Source of the DNA: Zootoca vivipara
Lineage: Eukaryota
Assembly (NCBI RefSeq): GCF_963506605.1
Contig: NC_083287.1
Span: 50,406,001-50,470,000 of the forward strand
DNA length: 64,000 nt
Direction of reading: 5' to 3'
Position numbers and translations under genes: made by a program. Shown in pieces: positions 14,692 to 55,048 of this stretch. Each line of letters starts with the position of its first letter. Within the stretch, counting starts at the first letter, position 1. The notes beneath the pieces were generated by a model. That model made no database searches. It saw only the letters and a list, made by a program, of their open reading frames with translations, and had not been told where the DNA came from.

Positions 14692-14895
<204 letters not shown>

Positions 14896-15020
14896 TAGAG
14901 CAGCCTTCGCCAACTGGTGCCTTCAACATGTGCCTTCAACTACAACTTCAGTGGGGCTGGTGGGAGTTGTAGACCAAAACTGGTGTAGAGTTTTGTTCTT
15001 CATTAAAAATAAAATAAAAA

Positions 15021-15435
15021 ATTGACTGTTAAAGGCCATGTTTCTGTTTCAGATACGTGGAATATGCTGAGAGCATTTTGCAGGTTTAAAAATGATGCGT
15101 CTTATTTACAGCTTTAGTTGTGATTTTATTTCTCTTGTTTCCTTATCCAAAAGTAAACAAAATGATTTCATTTGCTGAGTTGCGCTTAAGCTGGCAGGAA
15201 TGCTACTGAAATTTCTCTTGTGACTAACTAAGGCAGTGAAACATCGTTTAGTTTTAGCTATAAAAAAAAAACAAGCTGGGGAACAATGACATAGAAAAAC
15301 TCATGCAAATAAGAAGATTAATTTATCATTTAAGGCGTAAGTAAATGTGCTTGTTACACATTTATGTGCTTGTTATTTGTGCTTGTTACAGTTTCTGCTT
15401 TTTCATTTTGTAGAAGAATATGCCAAAAAAAATTT
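15021..15435 (+). repeat. left copy of ~405-bp direct repeat (L1 target-site duplication), including the duplicated WDR48 exon 17 acceptor
   Basis: matches 19620-20024 except 3 substitutions and 3 short indels (A10/A7, extra AAG, A8/A4). Confidence 0.95.
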
Positions 15436-18400
15436 TTTTGAAAAAAAATATTGATATCACAAAAAATCAACAAAATACAAACCAATAAAACCAATAAAAC
15501 CATGCCATCGCTATACAAATATCGTGTTGCGTCGTTTCCCCTGTTCTTTCCCTCCCTCATGTCCCTCCCTTGACACTTCTCATCCTGTTTTGAGCTTATC
15601 CCTATGTTCCACATATTATTTACATACCATAATTCATTCAGTTGTACGTATATATACATATATATACTGCACTAAGGTAATTACATATTATATCGATCCT
15701 TTGTTCATGACAGAGTCGTTAGACATCTGAGATAATGTTCAGTCTTTCCAATTTATTCCTAATGTAATTAATAAACGATTTCCAAATTTTAATAGTTTCC
15801 TCTGAGTTCATTCCTCTGATTTCTTCATAGTTTTTCGCTAAATTATAATAGTTAAACAATTTTATTTGCCATTCTTCTTTACTTGGGATTCCAGGGGTTT
15901 TCCAGTTCTTTGCGACTTATAACCTAGCCGCTGCTACAGCATAGCTGACTACACATCTATCATTTGATTGGATGTCTTCTGGTATCATTCCCAGGAGGAA
16001 CATTTCCGGCCTTTTTTTAAAAGAGTATTTCAACATTTTCTTTAATTCCTTATATAGCATTTTCCAAAACTCTCTAATTACACTACAATTCCACCACATG
16101 TGGATAAATGATCCGACTTCCTTTTTGCATCTCCAACATAAATTACTGGCCCCTGGGTATATATTAGACATTTTAAGTGGGGTCAAGTACCATCTATTCT
16201 GCATCTTCAAGATGTTCTCCTTCAAATCATAATTGGGGGGTAAAATTCAAATCTTTTTTCCATAAATTTTCCCATTTCTGTACTGGGATAGGTTTTCCCA
16301 GGTCTTGACCCCACTTAATCATGAAATCCTTTGTCATCTCTTCTTCTGTCCTCCATTTTAAAATTATCTGATATAAATTTTTTATATGTTTGCTCTTATT
16401 CACCAATAGTATCTCCTCCAATTTTGACATTTCCTTATCGAATCCCAATTTCCTATCAATTTGCAATCTTTGGTTTATTTGAAAATATTGCAGCCAGGTG
16501 GTCAGGTGATGTTTTATTTCAGAGTATTCTTTTAATTTTAAAATTCTCTCTTTTTCTTCCAATAAAGTTTTATATGTGGGCCAATTACTATCCATATTAG
16601 TCCTTTTAACAGCAACTAGTTCTAAAGGTGAGACCCACCAAGGGGTCTTAGGCTCAAAAAACCTTTTATATTTCTGCCACGCTAAATACAGGGATTTCCT
16701 AATTATGTTAAACATAAAGATGTTCTTTTTTTCTATTTTATCTTTCATCAGATAACGGTGCCAGCCGAATGCCAGCCCTTGGCCCTCCAAGTCTAGAAGA
16801 TCTGTGTTCTTAAGTTCCATCCAGTCTTTGATCCATGCAATAGCCGCCGCATTGTGATAGATCTCGAGATCTGGGAGTCCAAAGCCTCCCCTATCTCTAT
16901 GGTCTATCATGATTGTGTATCTTACCCTCGGTCTTTTCCCATCCCAGATAAACTTCACAATGTCTTTTTTCCATTCATTGAAGATTTTTTCTTTCCCCAA
17001 AATCGGTAAATTTTGAAATAGATAATTCATTTTAGAGACGACAGACATCTTAATCAATGAAATTCGGCCCATTAATGATAATTTCAATTTTCTCCATACT
17101 TCCAAATTTGCCTTTATCTTTTTCCAAATTTCTCTATAGTTTTCCTGTACCAAATCTATCCCTTTTATTGTTGTTTGGATGCCCAAATATTTCAATCTTT
17201 TGTCAATTTTTAAACCTGTTTTTTCTTGAAGTTCCTGCTTTTCTTTAGCTTCCAAATTTTTCACCAACATTTTTGTTTTCTCATAATTTATTTTCAAACC
17301 CGCTAATTTGCCATATTCATTTATCTTACTAATTGCTGAAGGTATACTTTGAATTGGATCTTCGGTGGTTATAATTATATTGTCTGCGAAAGCCTTTACT
17401 TTGAATTTTTTATTGCCAATTACTATTCCTTTAATACTATCCTCTTCTCTCAGATTTTTTAATAGAATTTCCAATGTTAATATGAAAAGAATAGGTGACA
17501 AGGGGCAGCCTTGTCTGGTGCCCCTCTCGATGTTTATCCTGTCGGTTAATCTTCCATTTATTAATATCCTGGCTTCTTGGACTTTATAGATTGCTTTTAT
17601 TGCTTCCTCCATTTGTTCTCCCAAATTCAGATTTTCTATTGTTTTTATCATAAATATCCGGGAGACTCTGTCGAAGGCCTTCTCCGCATCAATAGATAGG
17701 AGAGCTGCCCGCTTATCTCTCCTATTCTCAAGGCATTCCAGAATATTTACAATGTTTCTAATGTTGTCCTTGGCGGACCTTCCCTTTACAAATCCGACTT
17801 GATCCTTATGTATTAATTCTTCTAAAATCTTCTAAAATTCTTCTAAAATTTTTGTGAAGATTTTATAATCACAGTTTAAAAGAGAGATCGGTCTATAATT
17901 AGGTGAATCTGTGTCTGTTTGTGCTTTGGGTATTAATGTAATTTGTGCTTCTGTCCAAGATTTAGGAACCATTCCCTTTGTCAGTATTTTATTCATTAAG
18001 TCTTTGAGCGGAATTAATACTATTTCCTGGAATTCTTTATAATATTCTATAGGGAGCCCATCTAGACCAGGGGTTTTCCCTTTTTTCATAGATTTTATTG
18101 ATTCTATTATTTCAATTGATGTAATTTCCTTATTTAAGAATGTCATTTTTTCTGGTGGGATTTGTGGTAATTGATATTTTTTAAAGAATTCATCAATTTC
18201 TTGGCTACATACCTCTTCTTTTTGATATAGGGTTTCATAAAATTTATGGAATATTTTCATAATTTCCTCAGTCTTGTCAAAAAATTTCCCCTCTGACTTA
18301 ATTCTAGTTATTATTCTTTCATTTTTCCTCTTTTTGATCTGCCACATCAATAATTTACTCGGTTTATTTGCCCACTCAAAATATTTCCAGAATTTTAATT

Positions 18401-19619
18401 TCCGTTCAATCTCTTGATCAATTGTCCTTTCGAATTCCGTTCTCAATAATCTTAATTCTTGTTCAATGTTCTTATCATAATTTTTATAAAGGGATCTTTC
18501 TTTTCTCTTTATTTCTTGCAATAGATTTTCTTTCCTTAATTCCTCGGCTTTCCTGATTCTGGCTGTTTGCTCTATGAAATACCCACGCATAAAAGCCTTC
18601 CCCGCATCCCACACTATATTTGGGTCCACCTCACCATTATTATTTAGCTTGAAATATTCTTTAAGTTTTTTAATTGCCTCTTGTTTTACATTTATGTTTT
18701 TCAACATAAAAACATTTAATCTCCAATTTCTTTCTTTTTCTTCTTCCTTTAATATTAAAGTCATTGAGTTATGATCCGATAAAGTTCGGGGGTTAATTTC
18801 TGCCTTTTGAATTCTTAACGATAATTCCTTTGATATCCAAATCATGTCTATTCTGCTTGTGGTCTGATGTCTTGCTGAAATATGCGTAAATTCTTTTTTA
18901 ATGGGATTTTTATATCTCCAAGCATCTAATAAATTAAGATTTTTACTCAAATACATAAATTTCTTAGGTAATTTCATTTTATATTTCTTCATATTCCTTC
19001 CGCTTTTATCAAATTCTGGGTCGATTATTCCATTCATATCCCCCATTATTATAATCTTGCTTTCAACATAATTCATTAATTGAGATTCTAATTTTCCTAA
19101 GAAGGCTGTTTTACTCCCATTTGGTGCGTAGAGACCCACCCAGACCCACTCTTCACCTTCAATGATTGTCTTTATCATCACTATTCTACCTTCATTATTA
19201 TTCTGGTTTCCATTTCTTTTTAACATAAAATACGACACCTCTCTTCTTTTTTGCATCTGCCGTCACGAATTCCATTCCTAATTTTTCATTCTTTAATACC
19301 CTCAGATGTTTTTTATTTTTGTGTGTCTCTTGAAGACAAATTACATCATAATTTTGTTTTTTTAAGAAATGTCCCACCCTGTTCCGGTTTTTTTATTGTT
19401 TAAACCATTTATATTCCATGATATAATTCTTAGACTCATATTTATTTTATTGAAATTTTTTTAAAAAGGGAAAGAAAGAAAAAGAGGAAAAGGAGAAAGA
19501 AAGAAAAGAAAAAAAGGAAGAAAAAAACCACAAAAAGAAAAATTGTTAAAAACAAAATCAGATTAATCTCTATGCTAAGCAGAACCAAGGAAACAAATCT
19601 TAATTTCCTGTATTTGTGC
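15433..19619 (-). mobile_element. L1 (LINE-1) retrotransposon, 5'-truncated in the inter-ORF spacer; full-length but disrupted ORF2 (~19439-15719)
   Basis: APE endonuclease (MSLRIISWNINGL, IMGDMN, SRIDMIW, SDHN), RT (YRPISLLNCDYKI, GTRQGCPLSP, FADN, KYLG), CCHC knuckle CWRC..HMWWNC; several frameshifts and stops; short poly(A) at 15433-15439. Confidence 0.95.
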
Positions 19620-20024
19620 ATTGACTGTTAAAGGCCATGTTTCTGTTTCAGATACGTGGAATATGCTGAGAGCATTTTGCAGGTTTAAAAATGATGCGTC
19701 TTATTTACAGCTTTAGTTGTGATTTTATTTCTCTTGTTTCCTTATCCAAAAGTAAACAAAATGATTCCATTTGCTGAGTTGCGCTTAAGCTGGCAGGAAT
19801 GCTACTGAAATTTCTCTTGTGACTAACTAAGGCAGTGAAACATCGTTTAGTTTTAGCTATAAAAAAACAAGCTGGGGAACAATGACATAGAAAAACTCAT
19901 GCAAATAAGATTAATTCATCATTTAAGGCGTAAGTAAATGTGCTTGTTACACATTTATGTGCTTGTTATTTGTGCTTGTTACAGTTTCTGCTTTTTTATT
20001 TTGTAGAAGAATATGCCAAAATTT
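19620..20024 (+). repeat. right copy of ~405-bp direct repeat (contains the functional exon 17 acceptor)
   Basis: ATTGACTGTTAAAGGCC...ATATGCCAAAATTT, ending at an L1 endonuclease-like TTT/AA site. Confidence 0.95.
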
Positions 20025-20083
20025 AATAAGATTCCTTTCTACCTCCAACCTCATTCCTCTTCTGGAGCAAAAACGTTAAAGAA
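20007..20083 (+). CDS. WDR48: WDR48 exon 17 (intact copy)
   Basis: tgtag|AAG AAT ATG..AA|gtaagt; KNMPKFNKIPFYLQPHSSSGAKTLK. Confidence 0.95.
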
Positions 20084-20197
20084 GTAAGTATATAAAATAA
20101 ATTACAAAACTTCTCTTGGTTTCCAGGAGCATGAAATAAGGAGCCACAATCAGCTAAGACTTCATGTCTCAACTCCAAATACACTTTGTTTCCACAG

Positions 20198-20390
20198 GGA
20201 TCGACTGTCAGCCAGTGACATGTTGCAAGTTAGGAAGGTGATGGAGCATGTTTATGAAAAAATAATAAATCTGGACAATGAATCTCAGACAACTAGCTCT
20301 TCCAATAATGAAAAGGCCGGGGAACAAGAAAAAGAGGAGGATATTGCTGTTTTAGCAGAAGAGAAAATTGAACTTCTGTGCCAGGACCAG
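20198..20390 (+). CDS. WDR48: WDR48 exon 18
   Basis: cacag|..CAG|gtatcc; [29 protein letters not shown]...IELLCQDQ. Confidence 0.95.
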
Positions 20391-21404
20391 GTATCCCCAT
20401 TGCCTACCTTTCTGGTGGTTTTAAGAATTCAGTGTAGTGAACACAACTTTGTATGCCATTCTGAGTTCCTTGGAAGGAAGGCAGGATATGTTGGCTGGTA
20501 GCGGGGTCTTGAAGTCCTATAAAATGATTTTGGAGAAGAAAAGCCGGGGTTGTGTTTGTGGCATTGGAGCACACAACCTGTCACATTCTGAGAATTCAAA
20601 AACTGGCTCAAACAAAAACAGGTTTGCTTTTGTCCTGTGTTGTCTCCCAGTGGTTGAAATAATCCACTGCTCCAGGGTGGGAGAAGATTCTCCAGTGGGT
20701 ACCAACACCTCACTTTGAATGTCATCTTGCAGTAGAGAGCCTCAGCCATCAAGTGGGCGGAAACAACCCAAAAAGGCAAATTCCCTCTTGTAAAATTAAT
20801 TTGGAGTCCCAAAGGCACTCAGAGAACTGCTTTGAAATCCTCAAGTAGAGTTCCTCGGTCTCACACAAGTAGTTAGTAGACAAGGTGTGGTGTCTGACAG
20901 CCTCTGTCAGTACATTTCTCATACTGCAAAGTATTTTCCTTTAGTTGTGTGCTTTAGAAATGATGGTTCATCTTTCTTGGCTACCATGATGCAAGTTCCA
21001 TTTTGAATAATGTGTGAACTTTACTCCAAGAGTCTTAAAGTTTACATTCATCATCCATGGCTATTAGTAGTTTGTGCTTTGCTGCCTTAAAGCAGACTTG
21101 GGAATCTGAATGCCTTTGTACATCCTCTGGGTAATGTAATGTAGCCTAAATAGGCAACCTTAACAGGAAAAACCTGTCATAAGGAAGATGATGTTGCTGC
21201 TTTTGCAAAGCCCCAACAGCCTTTGTACCTGGATGACTGCTGAATTTGGGGGCTTCTTGCGCATAAAATGAGCTTCTGTGGCCAAAATTTGGGCTGCAGC
21301 CCTAGCACAAGCCTTCTAATGGCTGACAGGGAAATAAAAGATGCATGCTTGAGAGGAGAAACACATGGATATTTGCTACTTTCATAACAGATGGTGGGAT
21401 ATAG

Positions 21405-48265: not shown

Positions 48266-48345
48266 TCCTTCCAGTATCACCTTAGAGACCAACTAAGTTT
48301 GTCTTTGGTATGAGCTTCCGTGTGCATGTATACTTCTTCAGATGC
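48266..48345 (-). mobile_element. Penelope-like element fragment with degenerate hammerhead motif
   Basis: homologous to 49338-49418 and 60287-60366; core GAAA mutated to GGAA. Confidence 0.7.
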
Positions 48346-49337: not shown

Positions 49338-49418
49338 TCCTTCAGTAGCACCTTAAAGACCAACTAAGTTTTTATTTTGGTATGAGCTTTCGTGTGCATG
49401 CACACTTCTTCAGATACC
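49338..49418 (-). mobile_element. 81-bp Penelope-like element fragment
   Basis: 13-bp TSD TCTTCTTATGGAT at 49325-49337 and 49419-49431; identical to 60287-60366. Confidence 0.8.
49379..49418 (-). ncRNA. minimal type I hammerhead ribozyme motif (PLE-type)
   Basis: minus strand GGUAU-CUGAAGA-A-GUGUG(CAUG)CACAC-GAAA-GC-UC^AUACC. Confidence 0.7.
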
Positions 49419-49715
49419 TCTTCTTATGGATGTTTAACATAATGGCCAGTAGGTGTCCCCAGTACCTACACAGTTACAGACTGTGTTGGCTACTGTGTTC
49501 TGTGCCTTCCTGGTGCTCCTGAGTCTTCTAAATCTAACTCTCCACTTTCAGCAGATAAGTCACAAAATCCATTTTTTTTGTCTTTCTAAACCTTAAATTT
49601 GTTTTCTCCTTTATCTGAGTGTGACTCTGTAGCAATAAGTATGTAGCTTTTAATTAATAATAGATTTTCTTTCTTTCAATAATAGGCCTAATTGAAATTA
49701 AAATAGCATAAATAA

Positions 49716-51994: not shown

Positions 51995-52069
51995 AAAATA
52001 GCATAAATAAGTCATTTATGCTATAATTTACCTTTCTCTCTAATACTTTTGAACAAATTCTTGTTTAAG

Positions 52070-54715: not shown

Positions 54716-55048
54716 CAGGGGTCAGCAAACTTTTTCAGCAGGGGGGCGGTCCACTGTCCCTCAGACCTTGTGGGGGGCCGGACTATATATTTTTTTGGGG
54801 GGGGGGGAATAGGAACGAATTCCTATGCCCCACAAATAACCCAGAGATGCATTTTAAATAAAAGGACACATTCTACTACTCATGTAAAAACATCAGGCAG
54901 GCCCCACAAATAACCCAGAGATGCATTTTAAATAAAAGGACACATTCTACTCATGTAAAAACATGCTGATTCCCGGACCGTCTGCGGGCCGGATTTAGAA
55001 TGCTATTGGGCCGCATCCGGCCCCAGGGCCCTGGTTTGGGATCCCCTG
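54716..55048. mobile_element. hAT (Charlie-like) MITE
   Basis: CAGGGG...CCCCTG termini, 8-bp TSD TTCTAAGG (54708-54715 and 55049-55056), internal ~60-bp tandem duplication. Confidence 0.88.

Follow-up and report, generated by a model that had tools for sequence, protein, structure and literature searches.

An antisense L1 in an exon of WDR48, flanked by a direct duplication of about 405 bp

The WDR48 locus and the inserted element

The window, i.e., the whole 64-kb stretch of Zootoca vivipara DNA analysed here, contains 15 exons of WDR48 (UAF1), which we mapped by tblastn with the WDR48-like proteins P0079, P0027 and P0078 and which are collinear with WDR48 homologues. The exons were treated singly, with no spliced WDR48 model, and the identity of the gene is given by the exon following the target exon, whose translation matches human residues 583-647 at 64 of 65 positions (E 4.9e-34). 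The search of representative proteins with that same exon returned mostly single-exon fragments and was used solely for exon mapping. The exon into which the element discussed below is inserted is the 13th of the 15, and in a homologue of 700 residues the first mapped exon aligns at about position 118. Plausibly, roughly four WDR48 exons lie upstream of the window, which would make the target exon number 17. In other words, the initial annotation, which placed the insertion in exon 17 of WDR48, was right in calling it a WDR48 exon, while the number depends on this estimate of the upstream exons and is used here for convenience. Skipping of this 80-nt exon shifts the reading frame, and loss of Uaf1 in mice is early embryonic lethal (Park et al. 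2013, PMC3838189, as cited in PMC10999478). The features of the gene and of the element are as follows.

14752-14846, plus strand: WDR48 exon 16 (numbering inferred), ending in ...ITVD and followed by gtaag; tblastn and translation
15436-19619, minus strand (antisense to WDR48): 5'-truncated L1 of 4,184 bp; Pfam domains, frames and closest proteins
19619-19440, minus strand: stretch of 180 nt preceding ORF2; frames
15722-19439, minus strand: L1 ORF2, about 1,240 codons; frames
15721-15436, minus strand: ORF2 stop codon, 3' UTR and A tail; frames
20007-20086, plus strand: intact WDR48 exon 17, 80 nt, with donor AAG followed by gtaagt; tblastn and translation
20199-20393, plus strand: WDR48 exon 18; match to human WDR48

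The insert had been described as an antisense L1, and our analysis agrees. Namely, its minus-strand frames encode a reverse-transcriptase domain (Pfam RVT_1, E 1.6e-16; score 61 bits, cut-off 29.6), and the best protein matches to ORF2 are L1 reverse transcriptases from lizards and snakes, with primate L1 ORF2 ranking next; the closest, from lizards, share only 45% identity with it. The putative endonuclease domain, interrupted by two frame changes, scores slightly below the Pfam cut-off (Exo_endo_phos_2, 1.7e-05, 25.1 bits against 27.4), and homologues carrying PF03372 or PF14529 align to ORF2 from their residue ~21 on, its N terminus reading MSLRIISWNINGL...ICLQETH. ORF2 carries five lesions, that is, frame changes near 19388, 19210 and 16232 and in-frame stops at 17834-17832 and 15919-15917, which suggest, as far as sequence can tell, that the insertion is old. 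At this distance from the closest proteins, the 180 nt between the truncation point and the ORF2 ATG are only putatively L1, and the source element may already have been defective and passed the lesions on. The A tail measures just 4-7 nt.

A blastn search with the element across the window found a single other copy, a distant second L1:

49716-51994, plus strand: second L1, with a 16-bp duplication

The 16-bp duplication attributed earlier to this second copy is indeed present (AAAATAGCATAAATAA), and no A tail is evident, so to speak of short tails as normal for these lizard L1 families may be justified. The second L1 is an ordinary insertion, its duplication falling in the 7-20-bp class, and the two elements are alike in class, in having a TT/AAAA-type site, in 5' truncation and in an A tail that is very short or absent. 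They differ in that the duplication at the WDR48 locus is about 25 times longer and in that only the WDR48 element appears to have primed inside a coding exon.

Direct repeats and junctions

Repeat finding and MAFFT alignment both describe the element as lying between two direct repeats, which, together with the features at their edges, are listed here.

15021-15435, plus strand: left copy of the target-site duplication, 415 nt; repeat alignment
19620-20024, plus strand: right copy, 405 nt, continuous with the remainder of exon 17; repeat alignment
15433-15439: T7 run on the plus strand, made up of the target TTT and four T complementary to the L1 A tail, with an ambiguous boundary between the two
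20022-20027, plus strand: putative first-strand nick, TTT/AAT, on the strand carrying the antisense L1 sequence
14991-15021, minus strand: putative second-strand break, between 15020 and 15021, adjoining a 90% A+T tract

The two copies are identical at 399 of 402 aligned bases (99.25%). All three substitutions are transitions (T15168/C19767, T15324/C19917 and C15404/T19997), and the left copy has three additional A at 15262-15264, an additional AAG at 15311-15313 and a run of A8 (15425-15432) where the right copy has A4, so that the three substitutions and three short indels counted previously are all accounted for. Homology begins abruptly at 15021 and 19620, and the bases that precede it are unrelated, belonging to A-rich intron on the left and to the L1 5' end on the right. 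The pair is the sole long dispersed direct repeat within the 64-kb window, in which we found no further copy of the 405-bp unit, and chance is thereby excluded. Likewise, the idea that the unit is itself a dispersed repeat was rejected, there being no other copy of it in the window.

The left copy consists of 393 nt that correspond to the last 387 nt of intron 16 (the excess being the two 3-bp insertions) and of 22 nt from the start of exon 17, i.e., its first 18 nt plus four extra A. Each copy has a 3' splice site, with the AG at 15412-15413 and 20005-20006, followed by the same 18 exon bases, AAGAATATGCCAAAATTT, which in the left copy are interrupted by the four additional A; these lie directly at the L1 junction. 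Reading both copies bears out the earlier observation that they stop at a common point, 18 nt into the 80-nt exon, at TTT/AA, and that the Ts of the left copy run into the L1 tail. The repeats bound the element to the base, the duplicated stretch, at about 405 bp, exceeding the common 7-20 bp, and no second, short duplication flanks the L1 at either junction.

The L1 3' end with its short A tail adjoins the left copy exactly at TTT/AA, and the 5' end adjoins the first base of the right copy, both junctions being clean, without filler or inversion. In the intact copy, the first nick site on the plus strand reads AAAATTT/AATAAG, while the minus strand at the second break reads GTCAAT/TTTTTATTTTATTTTT, which is without an L1 endonuclease consensus. 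TTTAA occupies 0.31% of window positions. A TTTT/AA-like first nick site adjoining the L1 3' end, as found here, is expected of endonuclease-dependent target-primed reverse transcription, and so is a direct duplication that bounds the element exactly. A low-complexity mis-join at the right junction was considered and rejected, given that the 55 nt between the A/G-rich tract and 19620 are unique. Eight ORFs in the window, including the left-junction ORF 15357-15659 and one whose ATG straddles 19619/19620, have no entry in the protein collection and are uninformative on the junctions.

A single integration event and its alternatives

The most economical reading, and in our judgment the probable one, is that the whole structure arose in one target-primed reverse transcription event whose two strand breaks lay about 405 bp apart. 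In this scenario, the L1 endonuclease would have nicked the plus strand in WDR48 exon 17 at AAAATTT/AATAAG, and the T-ended 3' OH would have primed on the short A tail of the L1 RNA, giving the antisense cDNA. The opposite strand would have been broken about 405 nt away, as opposed to the usual 7-20 nt, in the 90% A+T tract of intron 16 and 174 nt past exon 16, presumably by ORF2p or a host nuclease or at a pre-existing discontinuity. Synthesis or joining of the cDNA would then have halted 180 nt upstream of the ORF2 start, producing the 5' truncation, and fill-in of two 405-nt 3' overhangs would have yielded the two copies of the target stretch. The order of these steps is our reconstruction. 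It was proposed from the outset that the element primed in a coding exon and that a duplication of about 405 bp restored the acceptor and the exon start downstream; every part of this proposal that sequence can address fits, as the L1 ends adjoin the repeats and an intact 80-nt exon is present.

In support of a single event, the boundaries of the repeats coincide with both L1 ends to the base. Against it stand the A tail of only 4-7 nt, the four additional A at the left junction and the lack of an endonuclease consensus at the second break. Could the same arrangement have come about in two steps? One might imagine a 405-bp tandem duplication arising first, with an L1 then entering at its junction and making no duplication of its own, or the L1 arriving first, whether in intron or exon, and being followed by a separate local duplication or repair. 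The tandem junction would have read ...AAAATTT joined to ATTGAC, a tolerable TTT/A nick site, and absent or very short duplications do occur among 5'-truncated L1 copies (PMC2912911). That said, two rare events would have to coincide to the same nucleotide at both L1 ends, while a single event needs no such coincidence, the unit ending at a TTT/AA that already exists in the unduplicated sequence despite the low frequency of this motif. What is more, the tract before 15021 ends in A-runs, which are unsuited to priming on a poly(A) tail. Taking both orders of events jointly, we regard a two-step history as very unlikely.

A different concern is that the duplication may be a product of the assembly. 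Assemblers are known to introduce false haplotypic duplications around heterozygous insertions, and in an animal heterozygous for a simple, exon-17-disrupting L1, an assembler that joined the L1 haplotype to the intact haplotype would create a false 405-bp duplication. The differences between the copies, 0.75% substitutions and small indels in simple runs, could be explained equally well as heterozygosity. However, the window contains zero N and no other dispersed long duplicate, and at 19619/19620 an overlap or graph assembler would have had no shared sequence to act on, the 55 nt before this join being unique L1 sequence; moreover, a false join would have to fall exactly at the truncated end of the L1. 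Finally, with five lesions in ORF2 the insertion looks old, and in an essential gene a null allele would not be expected to last so long. On these grounds an artefact seems highly improbable.

The decay of ORF2 (three frame changes and two nonsense codons) fits how far the repeat copies have diverged, and it argues that the allele has persisted, as an exon-destroying allele of an essential gene would not. If we accept a single event, an ordinary duplication of 7-20 bp at this site would have split exon 17. Instead, the right copy retains 387 nt of intron, the acceptor, the full 80-nt exon and the donor. As this copy passes without a break into the remainder of exon 17, the gene still has all of the intron's 3' end, the acceptor, the exon and the donor. 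From this arrangement we infer that splicing uses the downstream acceptor and that the outcome would be an intron of once 561 nt lengthened by 4.6 kb rather than a destroyed exon, that is, a presumed 'rescue' at the RNA level.

Relation to known long duplications and possible consequences

Very long L1 duplications were formerly ascribed to peculiarities of HeLa cells. Genomic surveys of L1 and other LINEs limit the duplication length, to 5-30 bp (PMC2912911) or 10-49 bp (PMC13295347), and consequently very long duplications are documented mainly in cultured and tumour cells. In HeLa, duplications over 100 bp occur in under 10% of L1 events, and in NER-deficient cells in most of them, with canonical nick sites; target duplications of 242 bp and 275 bp are among those listed (PMC5223499). 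Duplications of more than 100 bp around de novo human L1 insertions in cultured cells go back to Gilbert et al. 2002 and 2005 and Symer et al. 2002, as cited in PMC5223499, and in HeLa assays it is the 5'-truncated L1 class that is tied to 'extremely long TSDs' (PMC2912911). In tumours, L1 insertions are seen with tandem duplications of 1-10 kb, and these duplications are 'regarded as large TSDs' (bioRxiv 10.1101/2024.12.14.628481).

The human cell-culture and NER-deficient cases share with the WDR48 insertion a TTTT/A-type first nick, 5' truncation and a clean duplication of hundreds of bp. In contrast, they involve engineered elements with long A tails in transformed or repair-deficient cells, whereas the WDR48 element is an endogenous lizard L1 with a tail of 4-7 nt, found in a germline assembly, decayed since insertion and crossing an exon boundary. 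The tumour cases are likewise L1s flanked by a direct duplication of the target far above 20 bp, but they are somatic, larger and set in rearranged genomes, while the WDR48 case reads as a single clean event that leaves the gene intact. The mechanism is thus already known from HeLa, repair-deficient cells and tumours, and the surprise lies in a natural, gene-sparing instance; in our literature search we met no previous description of a long duplication that spares an exon hit by an L1, which is not proof of absence.

The same literature suggests a variant of the single L1 event in which the long duplication would come from a replication fork, where an Okazaki gap takes the place of the second break, or else from synthesis, break-induced or by strand displacement, that starts at the reciprocal end. 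The proposal of 'a more distal unrelated nick' for NER-deficient cells (PMC5223499) and the missing endonuclease consensus at the second break speak for this variant; against it, no sequence feature separates it from a distant nick, and the clean junctions show neither filler nor inversion. We consider it quite unlikely.

Returning to one target-primed event with distant breaks, its confirmation would mean that a germline lineage shows the long-duplication outcome known from cells, and that, through a long duplication, a hit that would destroy an exon of an essential gene can end as a tolerated intronic insertion, an effect invisible to cell assays. The WDR48 locus offers a concrete handle on the placement of the second-strand break and an argument for searching for long-duplication insertions with no limit on length. 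It is rather unlikely that LINE integration in this lizard lineage repeatedly yields long target duplications, with the present case more than a one-off. If it did, splice sites and exon ends would routinely be copied, letting otherwise lethal exonic insertions survive, and the copied splice sites would seed new transcript ends.

In the same vein, the duplicated acceptor would, if the event is confirmed, provide a substrate from which a poison exon or else an alternative last exon could form. One candidate lies at the left copy:

15414-15676, plus strand: candidate decoy exon, from the left-copy acceptor to an aag followed by GTAATT at 15677

Judged by its motifs, use of this acceptor together with the AATAAA signals downstream of it could give a UAF1 lacking most of the C-terminal SUMO-like domain. 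Namely, the candidate exon reaches a stop after 24 codons and contains two AATAAA signals at 15484-15498.

Repeats flanking an antisense L1

The best-supported reading of this locus, and one that we consider probable, is the one put forward in the initial annotation: namely, that a single L1 insertion primed inside exon 17 of WDR48 and that a long target duplication of approximately 405 bp spared the gene, since the ends of the repeats, the TTT/AA nick and the clean junctions all fit it. In particular, a repeat search of the window and a MAFFT alignment identify 15021-15435 and 19620-20024 as direct repeats, and a column-by-column count finds 399 of 402 aligned positions identical, in line with the near-identity claimed for them. 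The three mismatches are all transitions (T15168/C19767, T15324/C19917 and C15404/T19997), and the copies also differ by two indels of 3 bp, each in a simple run (AAA 15262-15264 and AAG 15311-15313), and by the length of an A run, which is 8 in the left copy (15425-15432) and 4 in the right. Homology starts sharply at 15021/19620, the bases before being unrelated. In the 64 kb no other direct repeat is both long and dispersed, and no third copy of this unit was found within the window, which contains no N. Shorter repeats also occur, namely a perfect tandem duplication at 54827-54964 with a spacing of 74 bp (blocks of 51 and 18 nt that overlap by 2 nt, 67 nt in total, both at 100% identity), and two short-repeat copies of approximately 72 nt (48272-48343 and 49343-49415; approximately 90% identity, 1,071 bp apart).

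Pfam, translation and database proteins all place the enclosed sequence (15436-19619, minus strand) in the L1 clade of LINEs, as had been proposed: RVT_1 is matched with an E-value of 1.6e-16, the endonuclease match lies near threshold, and the translation has a typical ORF2 start, MSLRIISWNINGL...ICLQETH. The closest proteins, L1 reverse transcriptases of Podarcis muralis and Anolis carolinensis, are only 45% identical, and the element's own family is therefore absent from the protein database. ORF2 spans 19439 to 15722 (minus strand); aligned with homologues, it shifts frame three times and contains two in-frame stops. With only 180 nt ahead of the ORF2 ATG, the copy lacks ORF1 and the 5' UTR, which indicates 5' truncation; between the truncation point and the ATG lies an A/G-rich low-complexity tract (19463-19540), rich in pyrimidines when read on the L1 sense strand. 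The 3' UTR ends in ...GATATCAATATTTTTTTTC, followed by only 4-7 A. A second L1 (49716-51994, + strand), 5'-truncated and distantly related to the first, is flanked by the previously reported 16-bp duplication, AAAATAGCATAAATAA, at 49700-49715 and 51995-52010. No A tail is evident at its 3' end, and so very short tails may be normal for these elements. In both, the 3' UTR contains a GGAGGGACATGAGG motif and is T-rich at its end.

Junctions and the origin of the duplication

The + strand carries the antisense sequence of the L1, and hence the primer came from that strand. In the intact copy the nick site on this strand is GCCAAAATTT/AATAAG, and in the left copy the shared TTT is followed by TTTT, the complement of the tail, and then by the L1 3' UTR; both copies thus read as initially annotated, with the repeat ending at TTT/AA and the tail joined to the left-copy Ts. 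As TTTAA accounts for 0.31% of window positions, a chance boundary there, beside an L1 tail, is unlikely. The left junction (15425-15439) is A8 T7, the target being A4 T3, and the four additional A, directly at the priming site, could reflect slippage in priming or fill-in, later expansion of the run, or homopolymer error. The right copy begins immediately after the L1 5' end, without filler, and no second short duplication flanking the element is found at this junction. An assembly artefact could also give an apparent duplication, but it would require a non-homologous join exactly at the end of the truncated L1, without a gap, and we regard it as highly improbable. Very unlikely, too, is a history in two steps, with the L1 entering an existing tandem-duplication junction or a local duplication arising later, as this needs two coincidences, each to single-base precision.

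The substitution divergence between the copies, 0.75%, bears on the age of the insertion. Approximately 5-6% of random substitutions in ORF2 create a stop, and two stops therefore fit this divergence: assuming 0.37% per lineage, at least two stops have a probability of 0.14-0.22, which becomes 0.37-0.52 if 0.74% is assumed, so that the observed number is compatible with it, though somewhat above expectation. If the element was coding at insertion, the allele persisted long enough for the L1 to decay, and an allele that destroyed an exon of an essential gene would not last that long. The decay thus argues that the duplication is real, an argument that hinges on the source copy having been coding.

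A single insertion with a long duplication would follow standard target-primed reverse transcription except in the nick-to-nick distance. Namely, opposite-strand nicks 405 nt apart would leave two 405-nt 3' overhangs, of which one would prime reverse transcription and the other second-strand synthesis on the cDNA template, and fill-in would double the stretch. The implied second break, between 15020 and 15021, adjoins a 30-nt tract of 90% A+T and does not match the L1 endonuclease consensus; ORF2p, a host nuclease or a replication-fork discontinuity could each fit as its source. That the same L1 event was instead accompanied by duplication from a replication-fork gap or break-induced synthesis we consider unlikely, this being a mechanistic variant inseparable here from a distant nick. 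The distance between L1 nicks can indeed be large: target duplications longer than 100 bp make up less than 10% of L1 events in HeLa cells and 57-91% in NER-deficient cells, where cases at canonical sites include duplications of 242 and 275 bp (PMC5223499). In HeLa cells such duplications are linked to 5'-truncated insertions (PMC2912911), and in tumours 1-10 kb tandem duplications at L1 insertions have been classed as target duplications of large size (bioRxiv 10.1101/2024.12.14.628481). The locus is a natural instance of this known, rarely documented outcome, and its gene-sparing effect is unusual.

The affected WDR48 exon and the left-copy acceptor

Using tblastn with WDR48-like proteins, 15 collinear exons were mapped on the + strand, the affected one (20007-20086, 80 nt) being the 13th. 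The gene is identified by exon 18 (20199-20393), in which 64 of 65 positions agree with residues 583-647 of human WDR48 (E 4.9e-34). The number 17 is plausible, given that the first mapped exon aligns near residue 118 of a homologue 700 residues long. Of eight ORFs from the window looked up by exact match, among them ORFs that span the junctions, none is present in the protein collection. Intron 16 now measures 5,160 nt and would be 561 nt without the insertion.

A duplication of normal length would have cut the exon after 18 nt and, since the reading frame is not kept when an exon of 80 nt is skipped, such an allele would be null; loss of Uaf1 in mice is early embryonic lethal (Park et al. 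2013, PMC3838189, as cited in PMC10999478). The downstream copy keeps 387 nt of intronic sequence with its polypyrimidine tract and AG, as well as the entire exon and the AAG/GTAAGT donor. The left-copy acceptor is nearly identical, the sole difference being C for T at position -10, and leads into 22 exon-like bases (the 18 plus the four extra A) and then into the antisense L1; it could open the following feature:

15414-15676, + strand: candidate decoy exon, 263 nt from the left-copy acceptor to a GTAATT donor at 15677

In translation, the frame entered from this acceptor reaches a stop after 24 codons. Positions 15484-15498 contain two AATAAA signals, and approximately 30 nt beyond them comes a GU-rich stretch. 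By exon definition, splicing should favour the downstream copy. Judging from these sequence signals, the decoy might be a poison exon, or it might serve as an alternative last exon, whose use would remove most of the UAF1 C-terminal domain.
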